A stretch of DNA of 63,469 nt, filler included, from Guillardia theta CCMP2712 (lineage: Eukaryota; Protista; Cryptophyta): the NCBI RefSeq assembly GCF_000315625.1. It is 4 parts of 4 records of this genome, joined end to end, with 100 filler letters (N's around TTAATTAATTAA, not from the genome) between each part and the next. Parts side by side here need not be neighbours in the genome. Positions count along the whole stretch, not along the records: positions 1 to 16,832 come from NW_005434634.1; 3 more parts are not named here. One strand, written 5' to 3'. The position numbers and the translations under genes are program-made. A model generated the notes under the pieces. The model searched no databases and was not told the origin of the DNA. It saw only the letters and a program-made list of their open reading frames with translations. This document shows, piece after piece, positions 3,402 through 10,300 of this stretch; position 1 is the stretch's first letter; each line of letters starts with the position of its first letter.

Positions 3402-4303
3402 ATGGAGCGGAGGGAGGAGGAGGAGGCCTACGAGCCGGAATCAAGGAGAATGTCGGGCCTTATGATGGCAGTTCTTGGAGGCATCATCATATCTGCCTTT
3501 GTTCTCCTCGTCTTGCTTCTTGTCTCTGAATCCTACATGACTATGCCGGCCAAATGCCTTCCCTTGGAGGACCCTAAGCTGGCAGAGAAAGTGGGAGACT
3601 CAACTCGACAATGTTTCGAAAAGGATACAAACTTACGGGTAGATCGAGACAAGCCTAGTGAAGAGAAAGATCAAGCATGTGATGAAATGACTCCAAACGA
3701 ATATCGAGCGTCCGTAAGAGTGCAAGTAATTACCGATAGAACGGGTTATGGGAAAACTGTCTTGGTTCCGGAGACTACGATATATGATTCAGGTTCAAAA
3801 CATCTCTTCAATGTATCGTTTATCTTTCCTGACACAAATGTTTGCTCGCAGCTTTTGAACGTTGGCACATCAACGGAACAAAGCAGATGGCGTGGGCGAT
3901 GACATATTGCCTTTGTCCTGGGTGCAATGGTATCCATCCAGGAGTTTGTGAAGAATGTACACCGAGGACGCCTGGATGTGATGTGGAGCCTCCTGAGTTC
4001 GACTGTTGGGTCCGCATCAGAAGGAGCGAAGCTGGATTCCCCATATTCAACATAGGAGTGACGAAAGTGCGCTTCGAGAAGTTCAGGGTTCGTTCTTTGC
4101 AGTTTATTTCGCCTGGTTCCTTAAAACTGACCTTTGACATACAGGCGGAGAGAAATGATGCTTTCTTGATTTCTCTCATCTTCTTCATAGTCTTGTTCGG
4201 GTTGCTTCTCATCGCGGGATTTTTCCTTGGTTTGCCGGCCAAGCTTTTTGGAAATTCTGACAAGAGCTACACCCCGCTAGAAGACCCTCCGCATGAGGCA
4301 TGA
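3402..4303 (+). CDS. Hypothetical two-TM membrane protein with Cys-rich loop (2 exons, intron ~3793-3851)
   Basis: ORFs 3318-3902 and 3842-4303 join through a GT..AG intron; hydrophobic segments near both ends; CLCPGC...CEEC...C...C cluster. Confidence 0.65.
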
Positions 4304-4450
4304 TTCAAGCATTCTTGTGCATGATTGTTCCTCTCCAGCCTCCTTACTCAACTATTCCTCTTCGCATGCACTAAGAGTGATATGAGAATCCATTCTTTAG
4401 CGAGTTCTGAGCCAACGCCCTCCTCCCTCTTCTGGAGCAAGGACCATCCT

Positions 4451-5052
4451 TTAAGCCAGTAACTGGTCCTTGAATCTATCTGCATCTACCACCTGATGAA
4501 AACCAATAAACAGAAGTATGAAGCTTGTTGTTCGCACCTCACACATCCACATGGCAAATCGATCGGGGTTTGCTGATAGATCAGCGATCTTGGTGCAGAT
4601 CACGTGGAGTCTTTGATCCGCGTCCTTGCTCAAAATACCTACAATTCAAATGTCACATTTGAAAGGTTTGCCCCTGCGATGAGCTTCCAAGGCACCTTGC
4701 GCCATCACGTACATTCCCTTGGCCAGTCGCCATGTATCTTTGTACTTGTCCTGTAAGGTCTCATGAGCATGTTCTTCGTTGCCGGACCCAAAGACAAGTT
4801 CTTACATAAACTTTGTACAACTCGGTACAATCAATTGAAACTACACCGGAACCATCATCAACCATGGCAGTTGTTTGTGTCTCAGTTTGCCGTAGGTCGA
4901 CTACATCCCCCTAGAGTTGCCAGTTAGTCTTCACATAACCTCTTTAACAAACGTCGTACTTGTATCCATACCCTTACATCTCTTCCCAGGTCCAACGAAC
5001 GCCTATGAGTTGATTCCAGCTGATCGACATGAAGCTTCACGCAAACGTCCAT
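4451..5052 (-). CDS. RMI2: RMI2-like OB-fold protein (RecQ-mediated genome instability 2), multi-exon
   Basis: Manual splice gives MDVCVKLHVDQL...VRVWIQ|GDVVDL...AMVDDGSGVVSID...AKGMYVMAQG...VICTKIADLSANPDRFAMWMCEV, matching the RMI2 pattern VWxQG/DDGxG/GxYVMxxG/KxxDLSxNP/MWxxEV. Confidence 0.8.
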
Positions 5053-5536
5053 TTTCCGTATAATTAATGAAGAGGTGGTAGAAGGGGGGTGGAGACAGTG
5101 GAAAATAAGAGGAGAAAGAGGAGAGCGACAGAACCGGGAGAGGAAAGAGAGAGGAAAGAGGGGGAAGGAAAGAGTAGATGGTAGAGGAAGAGGGATACAG
5201 TGGAAAGCGGATCAGGAATGCAAGGAGGGAGGGAGCGAGGGAGACGTTCTTTCAGATCTTCTTTGCGATCTCTTCCTCGTTCAAGTTGATCTCAGATAGC
5301 TACGTCTGTTTCTCTCATGGAGGAGGGCAGCTCCCCTTCATGCCGCCAAGTGGCAGCGCGCGGGTACGAGCACCATAGGGTTGGCGCCATTGGACTCTCG
5401 TCAGGTCGGGCTGATGTCGGGTTGATTTCTGGTGGGCATTGAGGGGATGAGGGCTCGTGGAGTTGGATGAGGGGAAGGGGTGGGTGAGGATGCTGAAAAG
5501 CAGGGGTGGGATCGATTCAAGCTATTTCCGGGAAAC

Positions 5537-7261
5537 ATGGCGCAGTCCGTGTGGCGGGGGATAGCGCTGATGGTGGTGGTAGGAGTGACGAATGCTCTGG
5601 GAGGAGGAGGAGGAGGAGGAGGAGGAGGAGGAGGAGGAGGAGGAGGAGGAGGAGGAGGAGGAATTCTGAGAGGAGGAAGAAGTGTTCATGGAGGAGCCAA
5701 AGGCGTCATGATGAAGAGCACTGCAGCAGTAAACAGAACCCGGGGATCGAGGAAGCAGAAGCGCGGCACGAGCATGCTCTTCGATGAAGCGTATCGTCCA
5801 CAAGACTCTCGTCACTTCAGCATACAGGCCAGCAGCACGTTCGTTCCTGAGACCTCTAAGAAGTTCCTCTTGACCTACGCCGACGGGACTGTCCTGAAAG
5901 GATTCCGAGGGTTGGATGTTGTGCAGCTGGGCAACTTCCATGCGCAAGCCCCGTTCGGAGTGATCACAGACTGCAACTCACCAGACTTCAACGGAGTGGA
6001 TGGCATTCTTGGTTTTGGTCTCCCAAAGGATGGCAGTGAAGGAGCCGACCTGCCTCGACCGGTTCTCTTCGCATTGACTGATCCGACGGCAAAGGATTCC
6101 AATGCTGGAAGCTTGCTCCGTAAATTCTCCTTCTTCTCCACCGACACGGCAGCAGAGCTCCAGCTGGGAGGTTATGACCCTGCATCGTGTTCAGAGGTGA
6201 TGCTCTACACTCCCTCCTTGTCCTCCTCGGACTTTGTGGTGGGAGTGACGTCGCTGTCCTACGGTACCCCAGGAGGAAGTGACCATATCGAGCTCTTGAA
6301 GTTCAAGAGTCCAACAGGAGGAGAATATCTTCCCGCCATCCTCGACTCGGGCACATCCTGTCTGGTTATCCCTGGAGACAACGTGTTCGGAACGCTGTCC
6401 AACAGCCCGTTCGATGACTTTGCGAACAACTGGAAGGAGAACACTTCCTTCTGGATCACCTTTGGAGGCAGGACGTTTGAGATCCCGTACAAGTCTTGGT
6501 TCTTGAGCAGCACACAGGAGACGTGCGTACAACCTTCACCGGACGGCATGGTTGGCATCTTAATTGGGGACGTGTTCTTCCGTCAGTACATCGTTGAGTT
6601 TGACATGCAAGACAATATCAGGCCGATCATCGGGGTAGCGAAACTGAACGCTCAGTACACACCTGTGAAGAGCAACGAGCTCGACTACTTCAAGCTGCAA
6701 CAGGCTCCACGTGCAAAGCTGCAGCTGCTCAAGGGTGAGGAGACTATGTATCCGGCGGAGCACAGTACCCGTCTCGAGGAGGTGGATCAGATTCCCATTG
6801 CCAACAACATGGGCACACAGTACTTTATGGATCTCTCCATCGGCACTCCCAAGCAGCCCTTCACCGTCATCTTCGACACGGGCTCTGCCGTCTTCGGCGT
6901 CTTCTCTTACAAGGACAAGCTGCCCGCGAACATCAAAGCCCAGCTGACGGCTCACCCCTACGTGAGCATGCGGATCGACCCGATGAACATTCTCATGCAG
7001 CGGCCAGGGGAGGTGAGAGACTCGAAGAAGCAGCAGGTGCAGGGGCAGGCGGTCTCGCTCGCCATGGCGGCGACTGAGATCAGGGGCGGGCCCGAGGGGA
7101 GGAGACATCATGCTCTGGCAGTAACCATGCTGCTGTGCATGATGTCGATGCTACTTGCGGTGGTACTGGCTTACAGGAAAGCAGCCCTGCAGCGAAGAAC
7201 AAGGATGGTCGTCGAGCTGCCTGTAGAGTATCGCGGCGTGAGCCGTGACGACGAAGTCTAG
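5537..7261 (+). CDS. Pepsin-family (A1) aspartic protease with signal peptide and C-terminal TM; motif order circularly permuted
   Basis: Single ORF containing ASSTF, flap YADG, DGILGFG, ELQLGGYD, AILDSGTS and LIGDVFFRQY, followed by TQYFMDLSIGTPKQPFTVIFDTGS; hydrophobic N- and C-terminal segments. Confidence 0.9.
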   Translation: MAQSVWRGIALMVVVGVTNALGGGGGGGGGGGGGGGGGGGGGILRGGRSVHGGAKGVMMKSTAAVNRTRGSRKQKRGTSMLFDEAYRPQDSRHFSIQASSTFVPETSKKFLLTYADGTVLKGFRGLDVVQLGNFHAQAPFGVITDCNSPDFNGVDGILGFGLPKDGSEGADLPRPVLFALTDPTAKDSNAGSLLRKFSFFSTDTAAELQLGGYDPASCSEVMLYTPSLSSSDFVVGVTSLSYGTPGGSDHIELLKFKSPTGGEYLPAILDSGTSCLVIPGDNVFGTLSNSPFDDFANNWKENTSFWITFGGRTFEIPYKSWFLSSTQETCVQPSPDGMVGILIGDVFFRQYIVEFDMQDNIRPIIGVAKLNAQYTPVKSNELDYFKLQQAPRAKLQLLKGEETMYPAEHSTRLEEVDQIPIANNMGTQYFMDLSIGTPKQPFTVIFDTGSAVFGVFSYKDKLPANIKAQLTAHPYVSMRIDPMNILMQRPGEVRDSKKQQVQGQAVSLAMAATEIRGGPEGRRHHALAVTMLLCMMSMLLAVVLAYRKAALQRRTRMVVELPVEYRGVSRDDEV

Positions 7262-7332
7262 AAGCCACCCGTCTCATTCTCTCCCCCTCTCTCCCTCTCT
7301 CCTTCTCATACTCTTACAAATTATTTGATTTC

Positions 7333-10300
7333 TTATTCTCTTCTGGGTTTGATAACAAAGCATTGAATCCCAAGAATTTCTGTAATCTCTCTTGTGACCT
7401 GTACGACTTGGTCATGCTCACATATCAAACAGAAAGTTTCACCCCAATGATGAAGTGAACGTAAGATATCATTGCTATTATGAAAATTCGTACAGGACGA
7501 CGTCTTCATGTGGTACAAGGACCTGACAGTCAAACATATTGTCACAGAGCTGAAGAATTCAGAGATGGGGGCGAAGAAGACAGCCAGCAACGGTAGAAAG
7601 AAGCATCACCGAATTCTCAACATTGGAAGGAGTCGGAACGAGAATATTCATTCCTCGATCAGCAAAGACTGACATATTGAAAGGCTGAAACAAGGGTTAG
7701 ATTTCACCCATGTAAATCGAGTCATAAAGTTCGAGACCCAGCACAGTTGCATGGCAGTACACTTAAAAGAGTGGGGGTGATCGGCTCTGAGATAGGGTAG
7801 GCGGATGTGGAGGCAACACAGGATACAAAGTTAGGATCATGATGATGATGAAGATTATGAAGATGATGAAGATGGTGGTGGTTGTGATGATGATGATGAT
7901 GATGATGTTGAGGAGGAGGAGGAGGAGGAGGAGGGGAGGAATGAGAACAGGGGATACCTTGAGAATGGAGGTTCCTATCAAATATTTCAAGGCTGGTATC
8001 TCGACCTGCAAGTCACTTCACTTTCACTGTCGCAGTCTCTCGAGAAAGTTCCTGATGCGCAAGATTGAACAACATGTGAGCACCAAGGAATGCGATGACG
8101 GAAATTGTCTTGCCCACTGCGAGAAAGTATCAAGAGAAGAGGGCGAATCGGCAGAGCATAATAAGGAGGAGTGGTAGGAAGAGATGGGGGAGAGGAGGAT
8201 TCCGAGTAAGAAAGGAGAGAAAAGTGAACCTGGATGATATTCTTCATCACAAACATGAGCCAACATGAGTTGAGTGACAAGCTGCAGATCAAGTCACTCG
8301 AACAGATGGAAGCAGGTGCAGCAATGGAGATAAGGAAAGAGCGGCACCATTGTCGTTCTTGTTCTTTCCCTCCATTCTCAATGACAGGGAGGAGGAAGAA
8401 TGGGAGAAGGGAGCAGGTGACAAGACAAAGAAGGCAGGAGAGTATCCAGATGATGAGCTGAGGGAGCAGAGGTGGAAGAGGAGGAGGAAGAGGAGGATCT
8501 GCAAGAAGTCTGGGAGTTACCTTGGAGAAGAGAAATCCAAGGGCCCATAATACAATACGAGGATGACGGAGCTAAAGGAGGAAGAGGATGAAAAGAAAAA
8601 GGCAGAAAAAGGCAGTTGATCGTAATCGTGAGCTCTGGTTCGCGCGAAGAAGTACGAACGTCACCATGATGTTTGTTGGAGACAACAGAACCCACGCAAG
8701 AGAGAGAAACACCTGTACCTGATTTAGTCCCCGCAACCGCAACCTCCACCTTTTCTGTTCTCTCACCACACAAAGGAAGGGCAACAGCCGTGTTAAGGCC
8801 ACCCGATATCTAAACTTTCCGTATCCTCCTTCGACCTGCGGGTAACATGAGGAGAAAAGGAGAGGAGCAGCAAGTGGAGGAGCAGGAAGCTGAGGAGAAT
8901 ATAGGAGCAAAATCTGATGTAACGAGAAGCAAGCTAGACGGAGAGCGACATCAAGATCGAGATTGAAATCGAGGTCAAAGATGACGAGAGAGTGGATATT
9001 GGTGTGATTAGAAACAAGAGGAGGAGCTCGTCACCTTGGCTTTGTTCTCTCGGACAGCAAGGAGCACGTGAAAGAAGTTCTGTCAAGTAAACAAAGTTAC
9101 CCTCTGAATCAACTTCAATGTCTGTCTCACTTGTGTGATTGTGAAGAAAGCGCACCCACAAGTGACAATAAAGAGAATCCAATTCCATGTGATGCCTGAA
9201 CAATGCAGCATGATCACAATATGGTGGGAGGTCAGGTCAAAACATCGAAGAGCTTCAATATCCCACGAAATAATTATTGATCAGACAAATTCTCCCGCTT
9301 TGACCTCCCATCCTCCTTCCAACCATTTTCTTTTCCATTAGTTTACATCCCCTGGTCACCTCATATCGCACAACACAATACATAATCGCAACCATGTCAC
9401 ATCGCCTCAAATTCTGCCATCTTTCACCGAAGATAGGACTTTGTTGTGTCCAGAACGACGCGCCAATGGCTGCAGTGATGAAATTGACTCCAGCTGCAAT
9501 CGCAAGCCCCTGCCCCATTCCGTCACTCCCAACCATTCTTGCTTCCTCTGTCCCTTCTCTTGTCAAGAACCATCCCCTCACCGCCTCCTCTCCGCTCTCC
9601 TCCCTCCCTCCCGTCTCCCCTCACCCTCTACTTCTCTTCTCCTCGATTACCTCATTGGGCCCATTAATGATCGCAAGTCTCAGCTCTCCTGTGTAGTATT
9701 CCTCCACAGTTGCGCTGTAGAACACCAGGACCGCTGCATTCCATGTTATTATCCTTTCCTCCCCTCCACAGACGCTCATGATCTTCTTATTCTTCACAAC
9801 CTAACCCTTTCCCCCTCTTGATCCTCCGATTTCTCCCTTGCACCCAACCCAAACTACAAATTGCTCCCACATTCTCGTCTTACCAACAAACCAGAACACA
9901 AAGGACGTCACGCCCGGGCCATACTGAACCACCGCACACCTGGCAAAGGTGAGCTGCATCGGGACTGATAAGGGGTGGAAGAAAGGACGCAGAAGGAAGA
10001 GGGCAAACATCAAGTTACAAACAACCGCAGAAATGAAAAGTGGCAGGAGTCAAGATAGTGGCAGAAGAACCAAGAGAGAAGATCAGGAGATGAAGGATTC
10101 AGCTCACATTGTGACTGACATCACAGTTGCATTGAGGGCATCACACCCGTGGTCGAAAAGCACTCCCAGAGCAGTTGCAGAGCCTGAAGAGAAACAGTGA
10201 GCCAACAAAGGGGAGGTTCAGATGAGATCTTAGCGTTCACGTTCTATCCTGCTACTGAAAGAATGTGGAAGGATCTTCTTCGGTGAGATTCATACCTGTT

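Follow-up and report, generated by a model that had tools for sequence, protein, structure and literature searches.

A pepsin-family aspartic protease gene of Guillardia theta with a probably circularly permuted, membrane-anchored product

Layout of the gene and of the encoded chain

The stretch of DNA analysed here (the window, 63,469 nucleotides, filler included) comes from the cryptophyte Guillardia theta CCMP2712 (assembly GCF_000315625.1). The gene under study, an open reading frame (ORF) for a pepsin-family aspartic protease, lies on a part of the window that corresponds to C40:17168-34055 of that assembly. The open frame is uninterrupted over positions 5480-7261 of the plus strand. Its first ATG, at 5537, yields a protein of 574 amino acids (ORF 5537-7261), and a GTG start at 5480 would add 19 residues; all residue numbers are counted from the first ATG. 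The original prediction, made from the sequence, had described a single ORF in which the body of the pepsin fold precedes the segment carrying the first catalytic motif, DTGS. This out-of-order chain is confirmed, and its features are listed in Table 1. Very probably, the locus is a genuine gene that is expressed and encodes a pepsin-family (MEROPS A1) aspartic endopeptidase of predicted activity, tethered to the membrane in type I topology and circularly permuted in its chain.

The public model of the same gene, P0393, is 495 amino acids long and 100% identical, begins at Met80 and is devoid of the signal peptide. This annotation looks truncated at its N-terminus, as the start at 5537 is backed by the orthologous transcript of Hanusia phi (P0001), which exhibits a similar hydrophobic N-terminus, a signal peptide, at its start. 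The (GGA)21 tract that directly follows the signal peptide is perfect and is missing from the Hanusia phi orthologue, and the spacer behind it is reduced to about 10-15 amino acids in the paralogues P0002 and P0003. The conserved core of the protein comprises residues 82-470, i.e., the body, the linker and the DTG segment. At the other end, the C-terminal membrane anchor that had been predicted was recovered as a helix in the AlphaFold2 (AF2) model, and a hydrophobic stretch is found at this position in about 90% of the family members. In 36 of the 57 members, the last 35 residues contain a Tyr-x-x-hydrophobic motif (YxxPhi), frequently in the form of YG[AT][VIL] close to the terminus. By analogy with YxxPhi motifs in general, which are sorting signals, the tail may suggest endosomal or lysosomal sorting.

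Table 1 Features of the permuted protease gene in the window, and A1 loci of the genome at which only the body was found
Feature	Position	Strand	Residues	Remarks
Start codon and signal peptide	5537..5602	+	1-22	MAQSVWRGIALMVVVGVTNALG; first ATG in frame
(GGA)21 coding microsatellite, giving a poly-Gly run	5600..5662	+	22-42	Read directly from the sequence
Spacer, basic, disordered, non-conserved	5663..5779	+	43-81	Predicted local distance difference test (pLDDT) <50; low column occupancy and identity
Pepsin-fold body	5780..6649	+	82-371	Equivalent to pepsin 47-326; Pfam Asp profile, VIA-align, invariant columns
Flap Tyr	5876-5878	+	114	Inside the body
DGILGFG	5999-6019	+		Inside the body
Second catalytic motif, DSGTS	6344-6358	+	270-274	Inside the body
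LIGDVFFRQY	6560-6589	+		Inside the body
Internal linker, old C-terminus to old N-terminus	6650..6781	+	372-415	44 amino acids
Relocated N-terminal segment of the fold	6782..6946	+	416-470	First beta-strands and first catalytic motif; phmmer, TAXi_N, pLDDT, docking
First catalytic motif, FDTGS, then VFGVF	6875-6886 (DTGS)	+	446-450	
Stalk	6947..7108	+	471-524	Ordered to about residue 480, then disordered (pLDDT); low conservation
Transmembrane helix	7109..7192	+	525-552	AF2 helix
Short cytosolic tail and stop	7193..7261	+	553-574	YRGV (YxxPhi) at residues 565-568, 7229-7240; stop 7259-7261
Body-only A1 locus L014	C56:101584-102171			
Body-only A1 locus L019	C9:1007403-1007891			
Body-only A1 locus L020	C19:210072-210530			

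Transcription and integrity of the locus

Assembled contigs of three public RNA runs (X1, X2 and X3) extend over the gene. Splice junctions of the minus-strand genes on either side are present in them: nine joints of 44-273 nt, of which eight read CT..AC (GT..AG on the minus strand). The contigs are therefore derived from RNA. The protease ORF is covered over 5670-7275 in X1 and over 5670-7396 in X2 and X3, with 0 differences from the genome, no gap and no joint. The message of this ORF is thus unspliced, with no exon joined to it from upstream.

These data bear on the possibility that the unusual order is an artefact of assembly or annotation, arising from a missed upstream exon that supplies a normal DTG segment or from two collapsed tandem genes that are read through. 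Cryptophyte genes usually bear introns, the neighbours at this locus are spliced, and tandem double A1 models do exist elsewhere, all of which would suit such an artefact. Nevertheless, besides the jointless contigs, independent transcriptomes of other genera and 16 separate loci in the genome share the order, each motif occurs only once, and the ORF ends in a conserved transmembrane helix and tail. We consider an artefact extremely improbable; a missed exon or a misassembly, in particular, was rejected on the basis of the colinear contigs and of the homologues of the same order.

Matches to the pepsin fold in swapped order

The Pfam Asp profile (PF00026) matched the protein with 95.8 bits, against a cut-off of 19.9 (E-value 4.4e-27), with residues 91-360 aligned to profile positions 42-308. 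The start of the fold was matched further downstream, where positions 1-25 of the TAXi_N profile aligned with residues 429-453. A phmmer search against all chains of the Protein Data Bank (PDB) gave the same arrangement: residues 415-457 align with chymosin 2-44, residues 92-368 with chymosin 56-320, and residues 419-455 with pepsin 4-40. The two matched pieces do not overlap, occur in swapped order and jointly span the mature enzyme. The pattern D[TS]G[TSA] is found exactly twice, as DSGTS at residue 270 (nt 6344) and as DTGS at residue 447 (nt 6875), in agreement with the original prediction that each motif occurs once.

The protein thus exhibits the family profile above its gathering score, one D-T/S-G-T/S aspartate motif per lobe and a bilobal fold. 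In contrast, the canonical chain order of A1 enzymes, in which the DTG segment leads and the flap, the remaining N-lobe and the C-lobe follow, is not observed, as the body precedes the DTG segment. To judge from its sequence, fold and catalytic residues, the protein is a member of family A1 that departs from the canonical chain order and from the N-terminal propeptide of the family.

The position of the break can be delimited. Because the body starts at pepsin 47 in the VIA-align superposition and the phmmer piece ends at about pepsin 40, the break point lies at pepsin 41-46, which we take to be the Cys45-Cys50 loop. We also compared the protein with a double A1 protein, P0216, which exhibits DTGS at residues 46 and 408 and DSGT at residues 224 and 586. 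Residues 77-451 of the G. theta protein are colinear with residues 48-412 of P0216, crossing the junction between the two copies. The halves are thus swapped, occur once each and are colinear with a tandem duplicate of the parent fold, as is the case for natural permutants. Together with the unspliced transcript and the relatives described below, this colinearity bears out the claim of a true permutation, neither a truncation nor a misassembly. The tripeptide after DTGS, usually LWV, is FGV, as had also been noted; all details of the earlier description that were checked proved correct.

Structural models

With the family alignment, AF2 gave a model with a mean pLDDT of 78.9 and a predicted template modelling score of 0.73. 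The pLDDT exceeds 90 over most of residues 81-480, reaches 93-98 in the DTG segment and is 76-91 in the linker. VIA-align superposed residues 85-371 of the model on pepsin 47-326 with a Z of 22.3 and a root-mean-square deviation of 2.2 A over 252 aligned residues, and Z was 22 for pepsin, renin and cathepsin D. The best Foldseek matches were proteinase A, plasmepsin X, BACE1, chymosin and pepsin (E-values of about 1e-11). As both programs align sequentially, these matches cover the body only (model residues 85-371), with the DTG segment outside their alignments.

The place of the DTG segment was addressed by predicting the body (residues 78-373) and the segment (residues 410-472) as separate chains, in three runs and with 3 controls. 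The interface score, ipSAE (interaction prediction score from aligned errors), was 0.83 in the three runs, versus 0.37 for the best of the 3 controls; 51 of 78 solved complexes and 2 of 108 mismatched pairs attained the mark used for this docking. Between runs, the contacts agree to at least 94%, and the partner pLDDT is at least 79. In the confident interface, residues 153-164, which include DGILGFG, contact 442-445 and 455; residues 444-445 contact 155-157; residues 99-101 and 127-130 contact 433-437; and the DSG loop is involved through residues 268-272 and 274. This packing is as would be expected if residues 416-456 took the place of pepsin 1-41 and the catalytic loops met. The predictions thus return the C-terminal DTG segment to the N-lobe, where it is modelled as touching the DSG loop, in line with the fold completion that the original prediction called for.

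As the segment docks as a separate chain, it could also fill the N-lobe of an adjacent membrane-bound chain instead of its own, giving a domain-swapped oligomer, and long linkers favour such swapping. However, AF2 models the single chain with confidence throughout core and linker, and the linker is long enough to close within one molecule, so that we regard swapping as very unlikely and closure within one chain as the preferred arrangement.

Permuted relatives and A1 loci of the genome

The order of the chain is not restricted to this gene. The Hanusia phi transcript P0001 exhibits the same order and 86.6% identity over its full length (1-565 vs 1-574). In all full-length matches of two database searches, down to 38% identity, DSGTS comes first and FDTGSxVFGVF follows about 177 residues later. 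The named sources of permuted relatives are Hanusia, Guillardia, Hemiselmis, Rhodomonas and Baffinella, all of which are cryptophytes, and transcripts with the same order come from Hanusia, Hemiselmis, Rhodomonas and Guillardia, so the motif order recurs in algal transcriptomes. In public records, these relatives are named 'hypothetical protein' or 'Peptidase A1 domain-containing protein'. A search of a protein atlas returned generic A1 clusters only, which gave no information on how widely the permuted form occurs.

We built separate hidden Markov models (HMMs) for the body (residues 82-371) and for the DTG segment (residues 412-470) and recorded the order of the two in the fetched proteins matching either of them. 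Of these proteins, 220 have the body before the DTG segment and 72 the canonical order (cathepsin D/E, phytepsins and enzymes of oomycetes, diatoms and fungi); a further 4 are tandem doubles. In a profile search with divergent permuted members, permuted proteins scored E-values of 1e-66 or better and canonical ones 1e-37 or worse; the exceptions to this gap are the tandem double P0319 (1.8e-61) and a few fragments of 263-313 amino acids. For phylogenetic trees, the cores were re-ordered by setting the DTG piece before the body, and 60 permuted and 44 canonical rows were included. All permuted rows fall on one side of a single branch, whose support in the Shimodaira-Hasegawa-like approximate likelihood ratio test (SH-aLRT) is 100. 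One change of order suffices, and a single origin of the permuted order is supported, though not proven, by these quick tree searches.

Two records of permuted proteins have unexpected sources. P0183, a transcript of 687 amino acids from Ancoracysta twista, a non-cryptophyte predatory protist, is a divergent permuted member with DSGTS at 201, DTGS at 490 and a longer linker; the proteins closest to it, with about 30% identity, are from cryptophytes. It could reflect a wider or older distribution, a gene transfer, or material from food or contamination. P0397, of the P0003 cluster, is a 299-amino-acid fragment of a permuted A1 protein of the cryptophyte type labelled at NCBI as 'MAG: pepsin-like aspartic protease, partial [Promethearchaeia archaeon]', and is most likely a eukaryotic contig that was mis-binned into an Asgard metagenome-assembled genome (MAG).

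In the genome of G. theta, we searched 87.1 Mb on 669 contigs with PF00026 and then applied the body and DTG HMMs to six-frame translations. PF00026 matched 29 pieces at 19 loci, and no match in the whole genome extends in order from profile position 1 to 300. The DTG segment lies downstream of the body on the same strand at 16 of the 19 loci, five of these being split by introns (C111, C21, C91, C39:447k and C39:150k), and none of the 19 is canonical. At the remaining three loci (Table 1), no DTG piece was found within 10 kb on either side, even at E-values up to 50; these may be degenerate or non-catalytic paralogues, or their DTG piece may be too divergent or too distant. As far as the genome search sees, the permuted form appears to be the only A1 form in this alga.

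Residue conservation is informative with regard to catalysis. Across 57 sequences, at 33-90% identity to the query, the invariant residues comprise D447, T448, G449 and S450 of the first catalytic motif, D270, S271, G272 and S274 of the second, the flap tyrosine Y114, G156, I157, G159 and G161 of DGILGFG, and L342, G344, D345, V346, F348 and R349 of LIGDVFFRQY, so that both psi-loop (hydrophobic-hydrophobic-Gly) motifs, DGILGFG and LIGDVFF, are conserved. This pattern is what would be expected under selection for catalysis. Alternatively, the protein could be an inactive pseudo-protease that retains the fold in order to bind a partner, as does the plant xylanase inhibitor TAXI-I. The three body-only loci, the loss of Trp39 and the removal by the break of the classical disulfide loop at residues 45-50 would fit this explanation, which nonetheless seems unlikely to us, as both aspartate motifs, the flap tyrosine and the psi-loop glycines are invariant in the gene and its 56 aligned relatives.

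Tandem doubles and origin of the permuted order

Head-to-tail double canonical A1 proteins, with the succession DTGS-DSGT-DTGS-DSGT, were found in the green alga Cymbomonas tetramitiformis (P0283) and in metagenomic records (P0319 and P0216). Their halves are 84% identical in P0319 and 100% identical in P0216, and the latter, with its identical halves, is possibly an artefact. The doubles could be natural fusions, although some may be fused models of tandem genes.

These proteins are of the intermediate type needed for a permutation by duplication and trimming, and the permuted protein is colinear with one of them across the junction. In contrast to the permuted proteins, however, the doubles sit among the canonical A1 enzymes and are not sisters of the permuted clade; as they nest there as independent recent events in the tree, we rejected them as its direct ancestors. 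With regard to the proposed route of tandem duplication followed by trimming, the route itself therefore remains plausible, since natural doubles exist, but the doubles found are not the ancestors of the clade.

In the paralogue L002 (C9:827632-827862), the Pfam Asp match that begins at the relocated DTG segment extends as far as profile position 74. What follows DTGS thus retains a resemblance to the region with which the protein opens, and it may be a relic of the second copy.

Proposed enzyme and its control

Taken as a permuted A1 protease, the protein would be built as follows. After the signal peptide and the variable spacer, the chain would enter the fold at the equivalent of pepsin 47 and would build the flap, the remainder of the N-lobe and the whole C-lobe, including D270 in DSGTS, the equivalent of Asp215. 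A linker of about 44 residues would then lead to the strands equivalent to pepsin 1-41, with D447 in DTGS as the equivalent of Asp32. By folding back into the N-lobe, this segment would complete an active site with two aspartates, and the stalk, the transmembrane helix and a short tail with a tyrosine-based motif would end the chain. The enzyme is probably catalytically active, judging by its conserved residues, and would lie on the lumenal side of an endosomal or vacuolar membrane or at the cell surface.

Several points weigh against this interpretation. The replacement of pepsin Trp39 by a glycine, in FGV, could alter the mechanics of the flap. Solved two-chain A1 structures that the predictor has memorised may account for part of the docking result. 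The trees come from quick searches, contain several long branches and sample the canonical enzymes with no more than 44 sequences. The (GGA)n stretch at 5593-5669 is bridged by no contig; the tract was passed over as a repeat, and its length is as assembled. Finally, the raw RNA-seq run X19 placed 39 reads at about 6% sampling, which is too thin for transcript ends or depth. As these reads are so few, the evidence for expression rests on the assembled contigs and on the transcripts of the Marine Microbial Eukaryote Transcriptome Sequencing Project (MMETSP).

The linker that joins the two pieces was present in about 90% or more of the members, with a median length of 44 amino acids and a range of 25-87, and it is weakly conserved, P391, K394, L395, G400 and M404 standing out; the model exhibits a strand at 381-386. 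In the original prediction, this linker was the old propeptide. A1 propeptides are of about the same length as the 44-residue linker, and length alone fits this claim. When 131 linkers were compared with 58 canonical propeptides by hhalign, no significant similarity emerged (probability 1.6%, P 0.03, 11 columns), and the A1_Propeptide profile (PF07966) did not match at E-values up to 1. The claim of a linker descended from the canonical propeptide therefore finds no statistical support. An N-terminal inhibitory propeptide is equally not apparent at the start of the protein: PF07966 does not match, and the spacer is non-conserved and, in paralogues, as short as about 10-15 amino acids. As no conserved N-terminal prosegment is present, the control of the enzyme would differ from that of classical pepsinogens, and the different activation mechanism proposed earlier can reasonably be inferred.

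Activity could be controlled by the pH of the compartment alone, or by a cut within the internal linker that would yield a two-chain enzyme. According to the latter proposal, which refines the permuted-protease interpretation and does not exclude it, residues 372-415 would form an internal pro-segment that blocks the cleft of the zymogen until its cleavage or excision at acid pH gives a two-chain enzyme, made up of the body and a membrane-anchored DTG chain. Its support comes from a linker that is retained throughout most of the family and far longer than a minimal connector, that is predicted to be ordered, with its pLDDT of 76-91 and its strand, and that stands in a protein without a conserved N-terminal prosegment (the spacers of P0002 and P0003 being the short ones). 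The body and the DTG segment are furthermore predicted to associate as separate chains, and HMMER alignments to prorenin, procathepsin D and prophytepsin extend 8-18 residues upstream of the mature N-terminus. On the other hand, the linkers are not significantly similar to propeptide profiles, A1_Propeptide is not matched in the protein, and the linker residues are weakly conserved. We put the internal pro-segment forward as a tentative proposal. The wider scenario is equally speculative: a single ancient permutation would have given the only A1 form of the cryptophytes, with a divergent copy in Ancoracysta twista, and the N-terminal propeptide would have been replaced by the linker as an internal pro-segment that holds latency until a cut yields a two-chain, membrane-tethered protease.

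Comparison with known aspartic proteases

The classical pepsin-like A1 enzymes, which comprise pepsin, chymosin, renin, cathepsin D/E, yeast proteinase A and phytepsin, are the nearest canonical sequence relatives of the permuted family in the profile search. They share with it the fold, DTGS, DSGTS, the flap tyrosine and the psi-loop motifs. In contrast to these enzymes, the permuted protein runs from pepsin 47-326 through a linker to pepsin 1-41, exhibits neither a conserved N-terminal propeptide nor the Cys45-Cys50 loop, has FGV in place of LWV and ends in a C-terminal transmembrane anchor.

A membrane anchor is known from the memapsins BACE1/2 and from plasmepsin V, which have a type I topology, a C-terminal transmembrane helix and a short cytosolic tail with a sorting motif. 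BACE also lacks the tryptophan after DTGS, exhibiting FAV. Structures of BACE1 are among the fold matches of the permuted protein, and plasmepsin V is among its weak sequence matches. The chain order of these enzymes is canonical and begins with a propeptide at the N-terminus, whereas the transmembrane helix of the permuted protein follows the relocated DTG segment.

Two-chain cathepsin D, with its DTG light chain and its heavy chain, indicates that the A1 fold works with the DTG piece as a separate chain and parallels the predicted docking; PDB entries of the cathepsin D light chain match residues 421-462. In cathepsin D, however, a precursor of canonical order is cut near residue 97 after translation, whereas the permuted protein has its altered order encoded in the gene, and a cleavage of its linker is hypothetical. 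A precedent for permutation within A1 genes is the swaposin, the plant-specific insert of phytepsins, which is a circularly permuted saposin domain (PMC8683733). The permuted unit is in that case an inserted saposin-like domain, whereas here it is the protease fold itself. The swaposin insert of the plant enzymes was the sole permutation discussed for aspartic proteases in the literature searched. A full-text search found no description of a circularly permuted pepsin fold, most subscription journals lying outside its coverage, so that an earlier report is possible.

The textbook layout of the pepsin family is a propeptide, a DTG lobe and a DSG lobe, and the activation of its zymogens depends on this N-terminal order. 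A whole algal lineage appears to use permuted A1 proteins only, with at least 16 loci in one genome, 220 related proteins and a single clade. This lineage provides a natural experiment on the tolerance of the fold for new termini inside the N-lobe, on the control of activity without an N-terminal prosegment and on how a permutant can fully replace its parent. We know of no zymogen logic based on an internal pro-segment in family A1, and such a segment, if true, would be a new one for the family. There is also a practical consequence, as annotation based on domains sees a partial Asp domain only, and gene finders or curators could wrongly 'repair' such genes.

Neighbouring genes

Both neighbours of the protease gene, at 4300-5400 and 7318-8300 on the minus strand, carry many very short introns; the protease gene between them has none. 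The transcript contigs fuse the protease message with that of the convergent downstream gene, which indicates that the 3' ends of the two genes overlap. Relative to the genome, all three transcript assemblies exhibit an extra A after position 7482, inside exon 7441-7520 of the downstream minus-strand gene. This difference may be a 1-nt indel error of the genome assembly, which would shift the frame of that gene. Further upstream, an ORF at 1442-2257 on the minus strand encodes a kinesin motor domain (Pfam PF00225, E-value 1.5e-95) and is probably one exon of a larger gene.

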